Assembly (NCBI GenBank): GCA_001179505.1
Contig: CDMY01000542.1
Span: forward strand, 286,187 to 350,186
Direction of reading: 5' to 3'
Origin: Vitrella brassicaformis CCMP3155
Taxonomy: Eukaryota > Protista > Chromerida
Length of the DNA: 64,000 bases
This document shows positions 2,559 to 60,300 of this stretch, in pieces (position 1 is the first letter of the stretch; each line of letters opens with the position of its first letter). A program made the position numbers and the translations under genes. The notes under the pieces were generated by a model. It searched no databases and had not been told where the DNA came from. It saw only the letters and a program-made list of their open reading frames with translations.

Positions 2559-5500
2559 CTACGCCGTGTCCGGCGCGTCGGCGTTAGCACTCTCGACTGC
2601 TTTCTTGGAGGGACTTTTGGGGCGCTCCGCCGAGGCATTCTGACGCACCGCTGTACACACACACACACAGACGCACACACACAGTGGTATGGTATGGTAT
2701 GTCGGCCCCCGCTGTGTGCTGTGTGTTGGCTGGCTGTCTGTGCGTCCGTCCCCACCGGTGGATCCGTTCTTGTCTGCGAGTGACGACATGAAGGCCAACA
2801 GAGTGGCGATCGACCTGCGCACACACACACACACACACACAGACAGACGCACAGAGGGGTGCCGGGCTGGGCTGGGCTGTGTGCTGTGGTGCAATGTCTT
2901 GTGCGCTGTGTACCATGCTTGTGCGGGGCAGGAGAAGTGGCAGGGGCTGCCGCTCTCATTCGTCAGCTCGGGAAGAGACATCCACGGGTCCACCACAATG
3001 TGTCTGCGGAGATGGGTGGCATCCATGTGTGTGTGTGTGTGCGTGTGTGGTGGGTGTGGGTGTGTGTTACTTGCGGTGTGTCTTTAGGTGTCGCATGCAC
3101 TCCCACTTGACGGCAGGGCTGATGGTGGGCGAGTTGATGGACCGCAGAAAGGCCAGCTTGGCCATGAGGAAATAACCCACCGGCCAGACCCACTCAGGAC
3201 CCTGGTGGTAGTTGAACCCATGCGCCACCGATTTGTCCTCGCCGTCATTGGCATTGTCGTACACACCTGATGCAATGCATCGCATCCATCGCACACACGC
3301 ACATCCGAATGGCATTGTGTGTGTGTGTGTGTGTGGTGTGGAGCAGACAGACGGACGGACCTCTGTAGTTGAGGTCGCTTGGGTCAAGTGTCTTGATGCC
3401 GAGCTGCTTCTCGTCGCCCATCAGGATGCTCTCTATCGTGTGCAGGGCCAACTTGGCGTGATTCTACACACACAGACACACACCACACACCACAGAGAGA
3501 GAAAAGGACCCCCGTATGGTGTGTCTGTGTGTTGGTACCTCTGAGAACATCTCAGGCGCGACGGACATGGCGATACATATGTTGGGTCTGAGCTGGTAGT
3601 CGCACCACGGCGAGCTGGCCTTGTGTGAGTCCTTGTACATCATCCGGCGGTTGATCCACTTCTCCTCCAGGTAGTACGGGATGTCGCTCTGCTCCTCCTC
3701 GCTGCACATCACACCACACACACACACACAGACACAAAGAGGCGCATCCATCCATCCATCCATCGATCTCTCTCTCTCTCTCTGTGTATGTGTGTGTGTG
3801 TGTGTGTATGTGTATGTGTGTGTGTGGCTACCTGGGGACGTAGAAGATCTTCTCGAAGGATGCCTCCAGGATGGTGTTCCACTTCTTGTACAGCACCTCG
3901 TTGCCTTGACACATAGGCGCCCACACCACACACACACACACACATATATACACATATACACACACGCGTAAGTGCAGACCTGCCCACCCACCCACCCCCA
4001 CCAGCCCAGCCCACCGTTGCTGAGGGTGACCGTCTTGTAGGGAAAGACATCCTCCGGCAAGGATGACACAAACCTGACCAACCGACCGGTGGACGCAATC
4101 ACACACACGGTGTGTGCGGTTGTGTCCTGTGCTGCTGCGTGCCTGAGAGCGCTCTTGAGGAGGCCGATGATCTCCACCGCCGCTCCGTCACGCGGCGTCG
4201 CCGGGACACCCTTGTTGCCGGCCTGACAAACATTGTATACAAACACGAGTGAGTGACACACGAATGAAATGAATGGTCCGTCAGTCCGTCAGGTGAGCTA
4301 CCTTTTCGCTGCTGCCCATTTTGTCCATCCAGGTGCCGCAGTTGTGTTGGTTGCCGCCGTAGATCATCCCTGCACCCAGACAGAGAGAGAAGGACGTGTG
4401 TGTGTGTGCCTGTGGGGCTTGTGCCGACCCGACCCGACCCACCTCACCTGTGTCAGGGTTCATTCTGATTTTGACGTTGAAACCCTCGTCGGTCATGTGC
4501 TCGTCGATGCCCTTGCCGGCATTCCACTCACGATACTCTATGCCCTACACAAAGGACACACGGACAGACACATAGACAGATAGATACTTACAGACAGGAA
4601 CAATGAATGCCTCTCTCTCCCTCCCTGTGTTCTGTCTGTGTCTGTGTGTGTGTGTTTGGACGTGCCTGTGCGCATTGCTGCAAAATGTGGTGGACGAGGT
4701 CGGCCAAGTTGCTGATTGGCGCTGCAGCCATCTCATCCATCCAACCATCCCAGCCATCCATGCATCCCAGCCATAACGTGCGCACACATCCCTATTCACG
4801 TGTGTGTGCGTCTATACCGCTGTTGGGGACGAGGGGGTACTTGAGCGTCACTGGCGTCAGCAGAAACTGCACACCTGCACACACACACAGGCGTTGAATC
4901 TCTCTCTCTCTCTCTCTGTGTGTGTGTGTATGTGTGTGGCGTGCCTTCAGGCGATAGCTGGCAGTACTCCTGGATGGCCTGCATGAAGAACCACGTCGCG
5001 TCACGCGCATTGTACCGGGGGTTGTTGCCTACACACACACACACACGATCTCTCTCTCTCTGTCTCTGCCATGTCTCTCGGTAGAGTAGGTATTTCTACC
5101 GGCGTCGAGTAGGTTTGGGATGAGTGCGTGTCTGAGCACGCGCGCATAGCCGAGGATCTCCTGCTTGGCCGCTGCGAGCCTCCTACAGAGACACACCACA
5201 CCACACCACACCACACCACAGCACATAGATCACATAGATCAGCCCACATCCGTCCGTGTATCCAGCCATCCACTGACCCCGTGACGAGGAGGCAGCCCGG
5301 CAGCGAGATGAACCTGACACAAACACATACATGGACACACACACACATACCAACAGATGGGGAGATGAGATGAGTGGCCACAAACGACTGACTGACTGAG
5401 TGACGTACGTGTCTCTTCCCCAGTTGCGCATGAAGCCACTTGAGAAATGAGGCAGACCTACACAGCCACAACCACAAGCCAACCACAACCACACCTGAAT

Positions 5501-57327: not shown

Positions 57328-60300
57328 CTATGTGGCGGGCTTCTGGTGGATCGACAGAATGTCCATCAGGCTCATACATGTCCTACAAACACCACACACA
57401 CAGACGGACACAGTGGCCATGTGACGCCCATCTCTCTCTCTCCGTGTGTGTGTGTGTGTGTGTGTGCACATACCCGAGTATGGCAACGACGACGCCCAGC
57501 ACTACCAGCCCGAGTGCTCTCAGCTTCCGCTTGTGCGTCACGGGGCCGGGACACAGCTTGATGAAGAAGTACTGATACGATGGACACACACACGCACACA
57601 CACACACAGAGAGAGAGAGAGAGATCCACACACGTCTGTGTGCATTGAGGGAGGGGTGTGTTGGCTCGCTCACCCCGGGCAGAATGAAGGAGACGAAGGC
57701 GCCGCTGGTGGAGCCTATGATCTCGAAGACGATGCTGATGGACGGCAGAAACACCGCTATCACAAACGTCAGCGCCACCTGACGACACACAAAATGGCGG
57801 AATAATGGGCAGATCGACGGGCATATCCACACGCACACAACACACCGTGCTCGATGCGATGATCATCGACACAGTGCGTGAGATCAGCTGGGGCTGATTG
57901 AAGAACAGCACCATCTCCTGAACACACACACACACACGTGTGTGTCATTGTGTGGCTCTGGCTCTGGCACTCTCTCTCTGTTTGTGCGTGGCTGTGTGTC
58001 GTACGATGGAGTATCTGCAGGGGAAGATGTTCATTGGGTAGGCAAAGGTGACCGCAAAGGCCATTCCAGCAAAGGCCAGGGCCATCATCACACTGAACCC
58101 AAAAACCACACACCACACCACACCAACACCCCCAGACACACCCACAGAGAGAGAGAGAGATCCTCACCCACACCCACACCCACACACCCTTTCTGCCCAC
58201 TTTCGTCCAATCGTCGCAGCGTAGTTCTGCATAATATTGCTGCCGGTCCCGTCGCCCCAGGAGAGGAAGCCGCAGACCCCCATGAGGGCGTAGGTGATGA
58301 AGCAGAGGAAGGTACTCCGCCTGGAAACCTTGACCATCCTCCGGCAGTTTTGGTTCTCGAGCTCGCAGTAGATGGCGGGCACGTTGGACTGACACGAGTA
58401 GGCGAAGATGACCAGGGAGAACGCCCTGCACACATGGCGTTGATGAATGAATGACACAGGCAGGTGTGTGTGTCTGTGGTGTGTGGGTGTGGGGGGAGGA
58501 GAATACCTGACTGGCCTGAACAGGTCTGGCGGCAGGACAGCTGCACCTATTGACGAGAGGCTTGTGTCCATGCCCTACACAGAGAGAGAGAGAGAGAGGA
58601 ATGAGCACACAAATGGCACACACACACACACGTACCTGTAGAAGAAACTGTATCGCCACAGCAAGGCTCAGAAAGACGATCGCAGCCACGCCCAGGAAAC
58701 ACGTGAACCTGCACCACCACAAGGCAATACACATACACCCAAGCCATGCACCCCCACCCACCACAGCCGGCACATGTGCCTCTCAGAATGCCCACCTGAG
58801 CTCGTTAAGCTTCTCCGTAACAGAGAGAGGCAGCAGCACCCCAAAGGTCACCACAAACAGGATAAATCGCCTGTCGAGGATCATCTGCTGCCACACGGGC
58901 AAGCCATCGATGACGACGTTGACTTGCTGGTGGCCGCTGGCGCCGTCGACGCCGTGCAGGTGCATGCCCCGCTCAAAGCAGGCGTCGATGATGGTCTCGG
59001 CTATGTCGCCGACTGAGATGAGATACCCCACGGCCGTCCCGAAACAGAAAAGAATGATGTTCATCTCGACGAAGAGGGCGAACTTGCGCCCCGCCGCCTG
59101 CACAAACACACACACAGAGGGCGGGGCGGTGTGAGGGTGGTTCACGCTTTAACGCGCTCTCGCTCTCACCCTGACGGCCATCTCTTCGAAGGTCTTCAGC
59201 TCAGTGAAGTTGATGACGTGGACGACATAGACGGTGGCCAGGATGGACAGGATGCCGATGAACACCAGAAGCGCGACACCTATGACCACACCTGACACAG
59301 AGAGAGGGGGAGAGAGATGGATGGATGGATGGCATGGCGTACCTGCGTCGCTGACAGCGAAAGGAATGCTGAGTGCTCCCGCACCTAACGTCGCGCTCGT
59401 GAGATTGAAGACGCTGCTCTTCATCGACCTGCACACACACACACACACACACACACACAAAATGCATGTGTGTAGCTCTCTCTCTCTCTGTCTGCGTGTG
59501 ACTCACCCAGCAGCGAGAAAAGGCCTGGATATGCTGGGCGTTGACGCCTCGCTCAAGGCGGGACTCGCCGTGACGTCACTGCACACACAGATGGACCACA
59601 CGCACCGATCGGAGTGTCTGTGTAGGGGTGTGTCTTCGGTCTCCCCCTCCCTCCCNNNNNNNNNNNNNNNNNNNNNNNNNNNNNNNNNNNNNNNNNNNNN
59701 NNNNNNNNNNNNNNNNNNNNNNNNNNNNNNNNNNNNNNNNNNNNNNNNNNNNNNNNNNNNNNNNNNNNNNNNNNNNNNNNNNNNNNNNNNNNNNNNNNNN
59801 NNNNNNNNNNNNNNNNNNNNNNNNNNNNNNNNNNNNNNNNNNNNNNNNNNNNNNNNNNNNNNNNNNNNNNNNNNNNNNNNNNNNNNNNNNNNNNNNNNNN
59901 NNNNNNNNNNNNNNNNNNNNNNNNNNNNNNNNNNNNNNNNNNNNNNNNNNNNNNNCCCTCCCTCCCTCCCTCCCTCCCTCCCCCTCACCCCCATAAGCCC
60001 TCAGCAGGCGGGCTGCCGAGCATCTTATCCTCTGGCGGCGGGGGGTGGGCCTCCTCAAATTCACTCTCCCTCGTCAATATTGGGTCCAGATTAGGCAGAT
60101 ACCCTGACAATGGCCATCCACCCATCACATCCACAACCCCATTGCAGTCATGGCATCATCGCCCTCACCTTGCAGGTGGAGTTTGCCGCCGTGTCCAAGG
60201 TGGTAGAGGTACCTCTCCCGCAAGAAGTCCACAGTGGTCGCTCGATGCCAACGGTGGTGGGCACGCACTGGATCGATCATGGGAGGGGTGTCGGGCAGGG

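Follow-up and report, generated by a model that had tools for sequence, protein, structure and literature searches.

Polarised dinucleotide arrays in Vitrella brassicaformis introns vary independently at the two intron ends

Introns of the alga Vitrella brassicaformis contain simple-sequence arrays whose kind depends on their position in the sense strand, with AC and AG arrays lying toward the 5' end and CT and GT arrays toward the 3' end, where a (TG)n tract runs in register into the acceptor. The ends look complementary but they vary independently, and a hairpin-based splicing system is therefore at most a by-product of this arrangement. All statistics refer to the modelled introns of one window, by which we mean the whole 64-kb stretch of DNA analysed, and their power is limited by the number of introns (219).

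Gene models and introns

The 219 CDS introns were modelled by a gene finder without a term for intron content (a two-strand Viterbi model), and introns spanning assembly gaps were left out of every statistic. In the region 12000-17999 the modelled introns match every spliced junction of the transcript contigs. The introns are of the GT/GC-AG type with a median length of 93 nt, and the exons have a median length of 84 nt. Introns of 93 nt leave little distance for a hairpin to bridge. The genes referred to below are:

2559..13610, minus strand: glycogen debranching enzyme (AGL) gene, two-strand Viterbi model with a CDS of 4569 nt and 52 CDS introns
14228..18349, plus strand: tryptophanyl-tRNA synthetase (TrpRS) gene, gene model with 23 CDS introns
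49174..55143, plus strand: MCM (MCM3-like) gene, two model pieces with 17 and 12 introns, split by the gap 52562-52861

The piece lengths of the AGL model equal the spliced pieces of the transcript contigs X2, X7, and X8, and Pfam matches were obtained for hDGE_amylase (exon 12721-12855) and GDE_C (exons 3109-3700). Three extra introns, reaching 14018, are located within or adjoining the AGL 5' UTR. AGL and TrpRS are arranged head to head, the transcript contig ends of both being about 50 nt apart. The TrpRS exon 17528-17662 matches PF00579 proteins, which their sources name tryptophanyl-tRNA synthetase, and the contig records 11 and 13 show the same splicing as the model. In the MCM gene the P-loop domain matches the exons 51563-51685 and 52084-52200, and position 182 of the 224 profile positions is reached before the gap. 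We read the right-hand piece, which carries no Pfam confirmation, as part of the same gene.

Abundance and polarity of the arrays

Dinucleotide arrays of at least four units comprise 18.2% of the intron bases, 0.6% of the exon bases, and 5.7% of the rest. The sequence-only reading from which this analysis started had claimed that the arrays are ordered along the transcript, and this polarity is real, intron-specific, and far above chance. It was measured in the sense strand by comparing how many of the 219 introns have an array of at least 8 nt in the 5' half with how many have one in the 3' half, and it is seen for all four motifs: AC is found in 79:16 introns (p 3.5e-11), AG in 28:13 (p 0.03), CT in 13:39 (p 4e-4), and GT in 22:130 (p 8e-20). 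The same order appears on the plus strand when annotation is ignored altogether. At gaps of at most 3 nt, AC is followed by AG 14 times and CT by GT 14 times, and neither reverse order occurs; at gaps of at most 30 nt, AC is followed by GT in 18 cases and GT by AC in none. AT and CG arrays are nearly absent, with one and two, respectively, in the whole 64 kb. In addition, the tetranucleotide motif CCCA (15:2) and its complement TGGG (12:6) both tend toward the 5' half, as do TCCC and GGGA.

The acceptor and the 5' body

The sequence-only reading had also supposed that (GT)n stands in the place of the polypyrimidine tract, which is borne out. The (TG)n repeat keeps its register right into the YAG acceptor, with a phased alternation of T and G between -24 and -4. 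The most frequent acceptor heptamers are TGTGCAG (30) and TGTGTAG (23). The last GT array stops 2-3 nt before the intron end in 34 of 120 cases. Only 52-56% of the last 25 nt are pyrimidines; in introns with a 3' GT array of at least 8 nt (GT3, 59% of introns) these positions consist of 40% T and 8% A. The 5' AC array (AC5, 36% of introns) is only loosely placed, its median start being 20 nt downstream of the donor. Ten of the ten RNA-verified CDS introns have GT3 and six have AC5. A GT tract without an AC arm is present in 75 introns, for some of which splicing has been verified.

From the first to the last intron decile the share of A falls from.25 to.11 and that of T rises from.17 to.35. 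After masking of the arrays the trend is the same but weaker (T.19 to.28, A.21 to.17). The departure from the window mean (21% A, 21% T) is larger at the 3' than at the 5' intron end. The AG dinucleotide has a frequency of 0.023 in the last deciles compared with 0.040 predicted from composition, and the nearest upstream AG lies at a median of 44 nt from the acceptor. The 5' half shows no deficit of GT dinucleotides compared with its composition, so that an avoidance of cryptic donors is not evident. In introns with an AC arm the donor is weaker, 65% instead of 79% having G at +5 (p 0.024), and GC donors are more frequent.

The following introns were compared with RNA contigs:

13445..13556, minus strand: AGL intron carrying an AC arm of 17 nt and a GT arm of 25 nt, confirmed by RNA contigs
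17460..17527, plus strand: GT-only intron with a GT tract of 27 nt and an AC arm of 0, confirmed by RNA contigs
12633..12720, minus strand: AC-less intron with (CCAT)n, then a CT-rich part, then (GT)n CAG, confirmed by RNA contigs
16401..16469, plus strand: GC-AG intron in which an AC-rich array begins at the donor itself (GCACGCACACAC...)
13682-13742 and 13855-14018, minus strand: two AGL 5'-UTR introns (joints 13681>13743 and 13854>14019, CT..AC ends)

Contigs X7 and X8 join the exon pieces 13298-13444 and 13557-13681 directly, and the intron between these pieces folds with a z of -3.3. The joint 17457>17526 (cut +2) of the GT-only intron was found in four of four runs; this intron has a z of -1.2 and is spliced without a pairing partner. 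The AC-less intron, flanked by the exon pieces 12518-12632 and 12721-12854, has a z of 0.0. For the GC-AG intron the joint 16399>16469 with two ambiguous letters offers no GT..AG solution, and the model agrees. The shorter of the two 5'-UTR introns (13682-13742, 61 nt) does not contain any array.

Predicted folds of single introns

Four introns had been cited as examples of a nested hairpin, and all of them carry the described arrays:

15295..15404, plus strand: TrpRS intron with an imperfect AC array (15301-15358), CT (15368-15381), and GT (15384-15401) running into CAG
17110..17209, plus strand: TrpRS intron with AC (17112-17131), AG (17132-17149), (CCAT)n, and GT (17190-17205) running into GCAG, without a CT block
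51961..52083, plus strand: MCM intron with AC (52007-52028) 45 nt past the donor and GT (52058-52079) abutting GCAG
12210..12336, minus strand: AGL intron whose sense strand shows AC, AG/GACA, CT, and GT, a complete four-block set found in only one other intron

Three of the four are predicted to fold as long-range hairpins. The first TrpRS intron forms a 19-bp AC:GU stem (-34.3 kcal/mol, z -3.8), and the second, whose position fits the length arithmetic of the transcript contigs, reaches a z of -6.4. The MCM intron has a z of -6.5, yet its 45-nt 5' tail remains outside the predicted stem and the donor is thus not drawn to the acceptor. Stems in the folds of the cited introns range from 19 to 25 bp. 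The AGL intron folds no better than its shuffles (z -1.1); its donor, earlier placed at 12328, was moved to 12336, the position that the length of contig record 6 fits.

Co-occurrence and pairing of the two ends

Both outer arms (AC5 and GT3) are present in 55 of the 219 introns (25%). The raw association is positive, with an odds ratio of 1.99 (p 0.022) compared with 0.93 across an exon. After stratification by gene and length, however, there is no co-occurrence of AC5 and GT3 beyond chance (55 observed vs 52.2 +/- 2.9, p 0.20), and the odds ratio is 0.90 in AGL and TrpRS, the two genes with the best support. A correlation of arm lengths, which had been suggested as a check, is not found between AC and GT (rho 0.09). 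The inner blocks do not behave differently: AG and CT co-occur at chance level (5 vs 5.0 expected), and all four blocks are combined in two of 219 introns with 2.5 expected.

Of the 206 introns that were folded, 50 carry both arms; these have a mean z of -2.16 and 24.4 long-range pairs compared with 14.2 in shuffles. As classes, 5' windows pair better with 3' windows (-19 kcal/mol) than with their own kind (-13). The 5' and 3' arms of the same intron nevertheless gain nothing over arms taken from different introns (-18.97 vs -19.41 kcal/mol, percentile 0.51), and chimeric introns fold equally well or better than real ones. It had further been proposed that the fold brings donor and acceptor together. 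The predicted donor-acceptor distance relative to intron length is 0.154 in real introns, 0.177 in shuffles, and 0.147 in chimeras, and both-arm introns (0.151) hardly differ from the others (0.155), which does not bear this out. What remains of the hairpin proposal is that a long-range AC:GU stem is predicted for the cited introns and for about a quarter of all introns; the nested genome-wide design is not supported, in view of the independence of the arms, the missing pairing gain, and the rarity of four-block introns.

Explanations of the pattern

The explanation that we favour, and consider probable though by no means assured, is that these are ordinary spliceosomal introns in a genome prone to AC/GT and AG/CT slippage, and that position-specific splicing constraints sort the arrays by deciding where each type survives. 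The stronger constraint would act at the 3' end, where a stretch of some 35-45 nt, rich in U, poor in A, and fixed in register to the YAG acceptor, would take the place of polypyrimidine tract and AG-exclusion zone; it would mostly be built from (UG)n, sometimes with (CU)n before it. The 5' body would be mildly U-poor and A/C-rich and could accommodate AC and AG arrays. Because AT and CG arrays are almost absent, U-free arrays can only be AC and AG and A-free ones only CU and GU, each pair being complementary to the other. A single switch from A to U along the intron may thus create the self-complementary look. That AG and CT lie on the inside could be understood if the splice-site consensus holds the outer end of a primary array in place and secondary arrays bud off at its interior end. 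Hairpins would be possible as a by-product wherever both arms chance to occur, in about 25% of the introns. The polarity had been called hard to explain by slippage, which is true for slippage alone, but a rule under which introns begin poor in U and end rich in U and poor in A would suffice without any pairing. Polarity, acceptor anchoring, independence of the ends, and the lack of an advantage for own arms are direct observations; from these we infer that some factor, whatever it may be, reads the UG tract as the signal for the 3' splice site, and that the pattern is maintained by selection against misplaced U-rich or A-containing arrays. The composition switch alone does not account for everything. 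It does not explain the rarity of AC in the 3' half, and it would lead one to expect CT and not GT by the acceptor. Nor does it account for the constant order of AC before AG (14:0), with the AC array so loosely anchored. The raw excess of AC5 with GT3 within introns over that across exons also points in the direction predicted by a hairpin.

Alternatively, within the pre-mRNA the (AC)n after the donor might pair with the (GU)n ahead of the acceptor and help to pair the splice sites with less need of a polypyrimidine tract and U2AF65, as in fish but of independent origin in an alveolate, at least in the quarter of introns with both arms. This is possible but rather unlikely. The polarity is that of zebrafish, with AC downstream of the 5' and GT directly upstream of the 3' splice site (PMC4691745), a pyrimidine-rich tract is missing, and the folds of both-arm introns, the 19-25 bp stems, the class-level pairing, the raw association, and the weaker donors of AC-arm introns all agree with it. 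However, the association is lost on stratification, arm lengths are uncorrelated, foreign arms serve as well as own arms, the donor-acceptor distance barely shifts, the would-be inner stems co-occur at chance, and 75% of the introns, some of them verified as spliced, lack one or both arms. In addition, with a median exon length of 84 nt an AC arm lies about as near to the GT tract of the preceding intron as to that of its own, and since any arm fits any other it is hard to imagine how such generic arms could give specificity. The idea can be adapted by assuming that (UG)n replaces the polypyrimidine tract in most introns, that AC:GU pairing aids 3' splice-site use with reduced U2AF65 dependence in the both-arm quarter, and that the arms seem independent only because they are interchangeable and slippage randomises their lengths; to this version, too, we give a minor chance. 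Quite improbable is a two-fold symmetric cause at the DNA level, independent of RNA, such as a sequence preference of chromatin, with exons wrapped in nucleosomes and introns serving as linkers, or a repair bias with the exon as its mirror axis. An AC...GT pattern reads identically on either strand, and intron centres are spaced at a median of 190 bp (IQR 156-236), near the nucleosome repeat, but the spacing is not tight (CV 0.41), the ends are asymmetric on the sense strand both in frequency (GT3 vs AC5) and in anchoring (GT in phase, AC loose), and the mirror fails for CCCA/TGGG and TCCC/GGGA, which all lie 5'. Introner elements are known in Micromonas and Aureococcus, and in the related lineage Amoebophrya a study reportedly describes invasive intronic elements with terminal repeats. 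An origin of the Vitrella introns from such a mobile element, introner or MITE, with the AC/AG and CT/GT arms as terminal inverted repeats, would fit intron ends that resemble inverted repeats, but we regard it as very improbable indeed: after masking of simple repeats the introns share no complex core and only tetranucleotide arrays recur, the best complex 10-mers occur in just 3-4 introns, and the arms are pure slippage-type repeats of variable length that are present independently of each other.

Comparison with known systems

No published description of introns with polarised arrays in this alga was found in the chromerid genome paper or in full-text literature searches. The closest known case are the structured (AC)m-(GT)n introns of teleosts and lamprey (Lin et al. 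2016, Genome Res; PMC4691745). In fish the co-enrichment of AC and GT was assessed relative to a uniform null and supported by splicing experiments; splicing there does not depend on U2AF2 and fails once the pairing is broken. The alga shares with them the AC/GT polarity and the weak or absent pyrimidine tract. A bridging stem is predicted for the alga as well where both repeats are present, but non-cognate arms and chimeras perform equally well and the end-to-end distance hardly changes. Unlike the long vertebrate introns, those of the alga are only about 93 nt long, its arrays are far more prevalent (59-72% of introns have a GT tract and 25% have both arms), AG and CT arrays are added, and the arms are statistically independent without a pairing advantage for own arms.

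AC-AG couples are among the commonest compound microsatellites in every surveyed genome (Kofler et al. 2008; PMC2644718), and such compounds arise by duplication of imperfections, the secondary array forming at the end of the primary tract (PMC2644718). The AC-then-AG and CT-then-GT arrays of the alga likewise abut directly, are one substitution apart, and occur in one conformation (14:0 each). That model, however, gives no reason for the strict order (28:0) or the link to intron ends, so that a positional constraint is needed in addition.

In mammals, hnRNP L reads intronic CA-repeat and CA-rich splicing enhancers, and TDP-43 reads UG-repeat elements located at 3' splice sites. There, single-stranded CA or UG arrays near splice sites are protein signals that act without pairing, which fits the independent ends in the alga. 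These elements regulate individual mammalian genes, whereas the arrays of the alga are a feature of the majority of its introns.

Implications and assembly gaps

UG-rich simple sequence instead of a pyrimidine tract abuts the 3' splice site in most introns of this genome, which offers a natural test case for 3' splice-site recognition without a polypyrimidine tract. It also offers a test of whether the AC/GU complementarity in fish reflects selection for pairing or a mere positional composition rule. Intron ends can become complementary in the absence of any selection on pairing, which calls for caution with claims of structure-based splicing. In practice, these stop-poor introns give rise to spurious long ORFs in each of the six frames, and assemblies break at their simple sequence.

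Of the eight 300-N gaps in the window, seven are flanked on one or both sides by simple sequence that is poly-C or otherwise rich in C, and wherever this could be tested the gaps fall inside genes, although continuity and reading frame across them cannot be established. At the MCM gap (52562-52861) the P-loop exons extend up to the left edge, a model on the same strand resumes at the right, and both flanks are poly-C. An example of a gap that lies inside an intron is:

33642..33941, no strand assigned: gap with a donor GTA and poly-C on the left flank, and poly-C followed by AC, AG, CT, and GT arrays on the right flank

PPR exons on the same strand are found on either side of this gap.

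Types and order of the arrays

The dinucleotide arrays that the sequence-only reading had described are present in all four introns it cited, which are located in the genes for tryptophanyl-tRNA synthetase (TrpRS; 15295-15404 and 17110-17209), an MCM protein (51961-52083), and the glycogen debranching enzyme (AGL; minus strand, acceptor-side end at 12210). In the window, whose GC content is 57.6%, 428 AC, GT, AG, or CT arrays with four or more units are found, versus a single AT and two CG arrays. Because the orders AC...GT and AG...CT are self-reverse-complementary, the order of the arrays can be tested without any annotation. 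At gaps of at most 3 nt, the order AC to AG is found 14 times and the order CT to GT likewise 14 times, and the reverse orders do not occur. At gaps of up to 30 nt the ratios of forward to reverse order are 18:0 for AC to GT, 16:1 for AC to CT, and 8:1 for AG to GT.

Gene models and introns

Transcript evidence was obtained from Logan contigs of four public RNA runs aligned to 12000-17999. Long spliced contigs are present in two of the four (X7 and X8), with GT..AG joints for the plus strand and CT..AC joints for the minus strand. Training of a gene finder on long ORFs had to be rejected. Since stop codons do not occur in the arrays, ORFs of 130 or more codons number 192 in the window and are distributed over all six frames. 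The codon model was therefore seeded from exons with RNA support, which have a GC3 of 0.8-0.86 in their true frames. Single-strand Viterbi runs gave overlapping and over-extended genes and were superseded by a joint two-strand Viterbi model scoring codons, three exon and three intron positions per splice site, and intron length, with no term for intron content. This model predicts 25 genes with 219 CDS introns (median length 93 nt; internal exons 84 nt), of which 199 are GT-AG and 20 (9%) GC-AG introns, a high share of GC donors. All coding-sequence junctions of the contigs were recovered within the stated ambiguity of the tool, and the lengths of the contig records are consistent with the model over 12103-13444 and 16591-17933. 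For the cited AGL intron, the donor had been placed at 12328; the contig-length arithmetic gives 12336 instead.

Gene identities were tested one exon at a time, which also revealed MCM P-loop, PPR, MORN, and Aa_trans domains in the window.

Genes and GC-AG introns in or overlapping the RNA-covered region
2559..13610, minus strand: AGL, an 11-kb model with hDGE_amylase and GDE_C domains at opposite ends (exon-wise domain search)
14228..18349, plus strand: TrpRS, with an exon matching tRNA-synt_1b; the matched proteins are named tryptophanyl-tRNA synthetase by their sources
16401-16469, plus strand: GC-AG intron in RNA contigs, AC array beginning at the donor (GCACAC...)
17663-17750, plus strand: GC-AG intron in RNA contigs, AC array likewise beginning at the donor

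AGL and TrpRS are arranged head to head, with a distance of only about 50 nt between their transcript contig ends (14179-14228), a spacing suggestive of a very compact bidirectional promoter. Three introns are located in or beside the AGL 5' UTR (13445-14018, minus strand). Every frame of the exons at 13557-14179 is interrupted by stop codons; UTR introns thus exist and escape CDS-based models. High-depth joints such as 13476>17896 were considered as traces of a spliced leader and rejected as simple-repeat matches between different introns. No U2AF orthologue was found within the window.

The window contains eight assembly gaps (31136-59955) of exactly 300 N each. Seven of them adjoin long poly-C or other C-rich simple sequence of the (CCCT)n type on at least one side, and C homopolymers, not dinucleotide arrays, seem to be the points at which the assembly breaks. 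At the gap at 52562 the MCM exons run to the left edge and a same-strand model restarts on the right, and at 33642 PPR exons of one strand flank both sides. The gaps therefore lie in simple sequence within genes, mostly within introns, and gap-spanning introns were excluded from every count. The three neighbouring plus-strand models at 28481-36160, separated by two gaps, probably represent a single long PPR gene that these gaps interrupt. The second and third model contain confirmed PPR repeats, the single exon scanned of the first did not match Pfam, and the exon directly after the gap 33642-33941 begins partway through a PPR motif. A putative (Leu-Ser)n coding region at a gap edge (46851-47006, minus strand) is artefactual: in the partial-gene state the model reads through a (CT)n array.

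Polarity within introns

In the modelled introns each array type prefers one half, most strongly AC and GT.

Introns with an array of at least 8 nt in the respective half (sense strand, 219 introns)
Array; 5' half; 3' half; p
AC; 79; 16; 3.5e-11
AG; 28; 13; 0.03
CT; 13; 39; 4e-4
GT; 22; 130; 8e-20

The polarity is sharper in AGL and TrpRS, the best-supported genes (75 introns; AC 36:2, GT 9:55). GACA and TGTC arrays share the polarity of AC and GT, and no mirror relation exists for CCCA versus TGGG or TCCC versus GGGA. (GGAT)n and (ATCC)n arrays are found near the middle of about 20-28 introns and have no polarity (e.g. 12633-12720, minus strand, and 17166-17189, plus strand). Arrays account for 18.2% of the intron bases, 0.6% of the exon bases, and 5.7% of the remainder, the latter largely being UTR introns and gap flanks. 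The base composition shifts from A.25, C.34, G.24, and T.17 in the first intron decile to A.11, C.16, G.37, and T.35 in the last, and this trend persists, in weaker form, when the arrays are masked.

The two intron ends are not equivalent. The acceptor is preceded by a phase-locked T/G alternation from -24 to -4, its most frequent heptamers are TGTGCAG and TGTGTAG, and in 34 of 120 introns the last GT array ends 2-3 nt before the intron end. In contrast, the donor is a fairly ordinary GTRNGY, and the median start of the first AC array is +20 nt from it. Of the donor properties, only G at +5 is less frequent where an AC array is close by. The pyrimidine content of the last 25 nt is only 52-56%. 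AG dinucleotides in the last deciles are below the expectation from composition, and the nearest AG upstream of the acceptor is found at a median distance of 44 nt. In the modelled introns, no CTRAY-type branch point motif shows enrichment at any constant distance from the acceptor.

Pairing between the intron ends

It had been proposed that an AC:GU stem joins donor and acceptor. Three of the four cited introns indeed form long AC:GU stems (z -3.8 to -6.5), and these are the best cases. Among 206 introns of 50-250 nt compared with dinucleotide shuffles, the overall mean z is -0.82, and most of the excess folding is found in the 50 introns with both arms, an AC array in the 5' part and a GT array in the 3' part (z -2.16). 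Chimeras of the own 5' half and a foreign 3' half fold equally well or better (-30.1 versus -28.5 kcal/mol for native introns) and contain the same numbers of long-range pairs. Duplex energies between 36-nt donor-adjacent and acceptor-adjacent windows were compared in a full 155 x 155 matrix.

Mean duplex energies (kcal/mol)
5' x 3' window, same intron: -18.97
5' x 3' window, different introns: -19.41
Shuffled arms: -16.0
5' x 5' window: -13.1
3' x 3' window: -13.8

The native arm pair ranks at percentile 0.51, with an interaction term indistinguishable from zero. Native pairs are no better than foreign ones, and the complementarity therefore belongs to the end classes and not to individual introns. 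In the raw table the two arms are associated (OR 1.99, p 0.022), which may in part be inflated by mis-modelled introns without either arm. If permuted within gene and length class, 55 both-arm introns are observed versus 52.2 +/- 2.9 expected (p 0.20), and the OR in AGL and TrpRS is 0.90. The expected correlation of arm lengths is absent (rho 0.09), the supposedly nested inner AG and CT blocks are found together in 5 introns versus 5.0 expected, and the full four-block architecture is restricted to 2 introns versus 2.5 expected. Native introns have a predicted donor-acceptor path of 0.154 relative to intron length, compared with 0.177 for shuffled and 0.147 for chimeric introns, and both-arm introns are no different from the others in this respect. 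Splicing is verified for introns that have a GT tract but lack the AC arm (e.g. 17460-17527 and 12633-12720). A contribution of AC:GU pairing in the both-arm introns, for which their folding excess would speak, is rather unlikely.

In zebrafish introns a bridging stem, which makes U2AF2 unnecessary, is supported by co-enrichment against a uniform null and by splicing experiments (PMC4691745). The polarity of the arrays is the same in zebrafish and in the window (PMC4691745). However, the null applied here is stricter than the uniform one, and the defining co-occurrence was not found under it, so that the introns of the window are not classed with the zebrafish-type structured introns.

Origin of the pattern

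Most likely, a single compositional asymmetry along the intron is sufficient for the pattern. The intron would have a 5' body mildly depleted in U, and after it a tract that is rich in U, poor in A, and anchored on YAG. Genomic slippage would supply AC/GT and AG/CT arrays and hardly any AT or CG, so that the U-free arrays would be AC and AG and the A-free arrays CU and GU. With array types restricted in this way, the U-free and A-free sets are necessarily complementary. Compared with the 5' body, the 3' tract is stronger, more frequent, and better anchored, and we infer a role for it as 3' splice-site signal and AG-exclusion zone, replacing the pyrimidine tract. AG and CT arrays could be placed inside if the splice-site consensus blocked the outer end of the tract. 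Compound microsatellites are known to arise by duplication of imperfections at the tract end (PMC2644718), and the inner position of AG and CT is consistent with such an origin (PMC2644718). The asymmetry does not cover the strict order of AC before AG, given the loosely anchored AC, nor the preference of GT over CT beside the acceptor.

Other causes were considered and rejected. Avoidance of cryptic donors does not account for the U-poor 5' half, in which GT dinucleotides are not depleted relative to composition, and hairpins do not compensate for weak donors, whose scores are alike in both-arm and other introns (p 0.38). For introners, no conserved element core was found across the introns; a shared motif like GATGCCTGTGGATG is present in only 1-4 introns. 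A comparison of orthologous introns by word search with one TrpRS exon was dropped, the matches being only exon-sized metagenomic eukaryote fragments. The two metagenomic contigs L001 and L002 are AT-rich (GC 0.36 and 0.28), almost free of arrays, and not informative on chromerid relatives. The array pattern is not mentioned in the chromerid genome paper, and a full-text literature search found no account of it.

A stop codon is absent from 55% of the combinations of intron and frame, compared with 32% for shuffled sequences, and 48 introns are stop-free in all sense frames. Stop-poor introns, the source of the false long ORFs, are a trap for ORF-based annotation, and read-through of retained introns is often to be expected. 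The centres of successive introns are spaced at a median of 190 bp (IQR 156-236), which is approximately the nucleosome repeat length.
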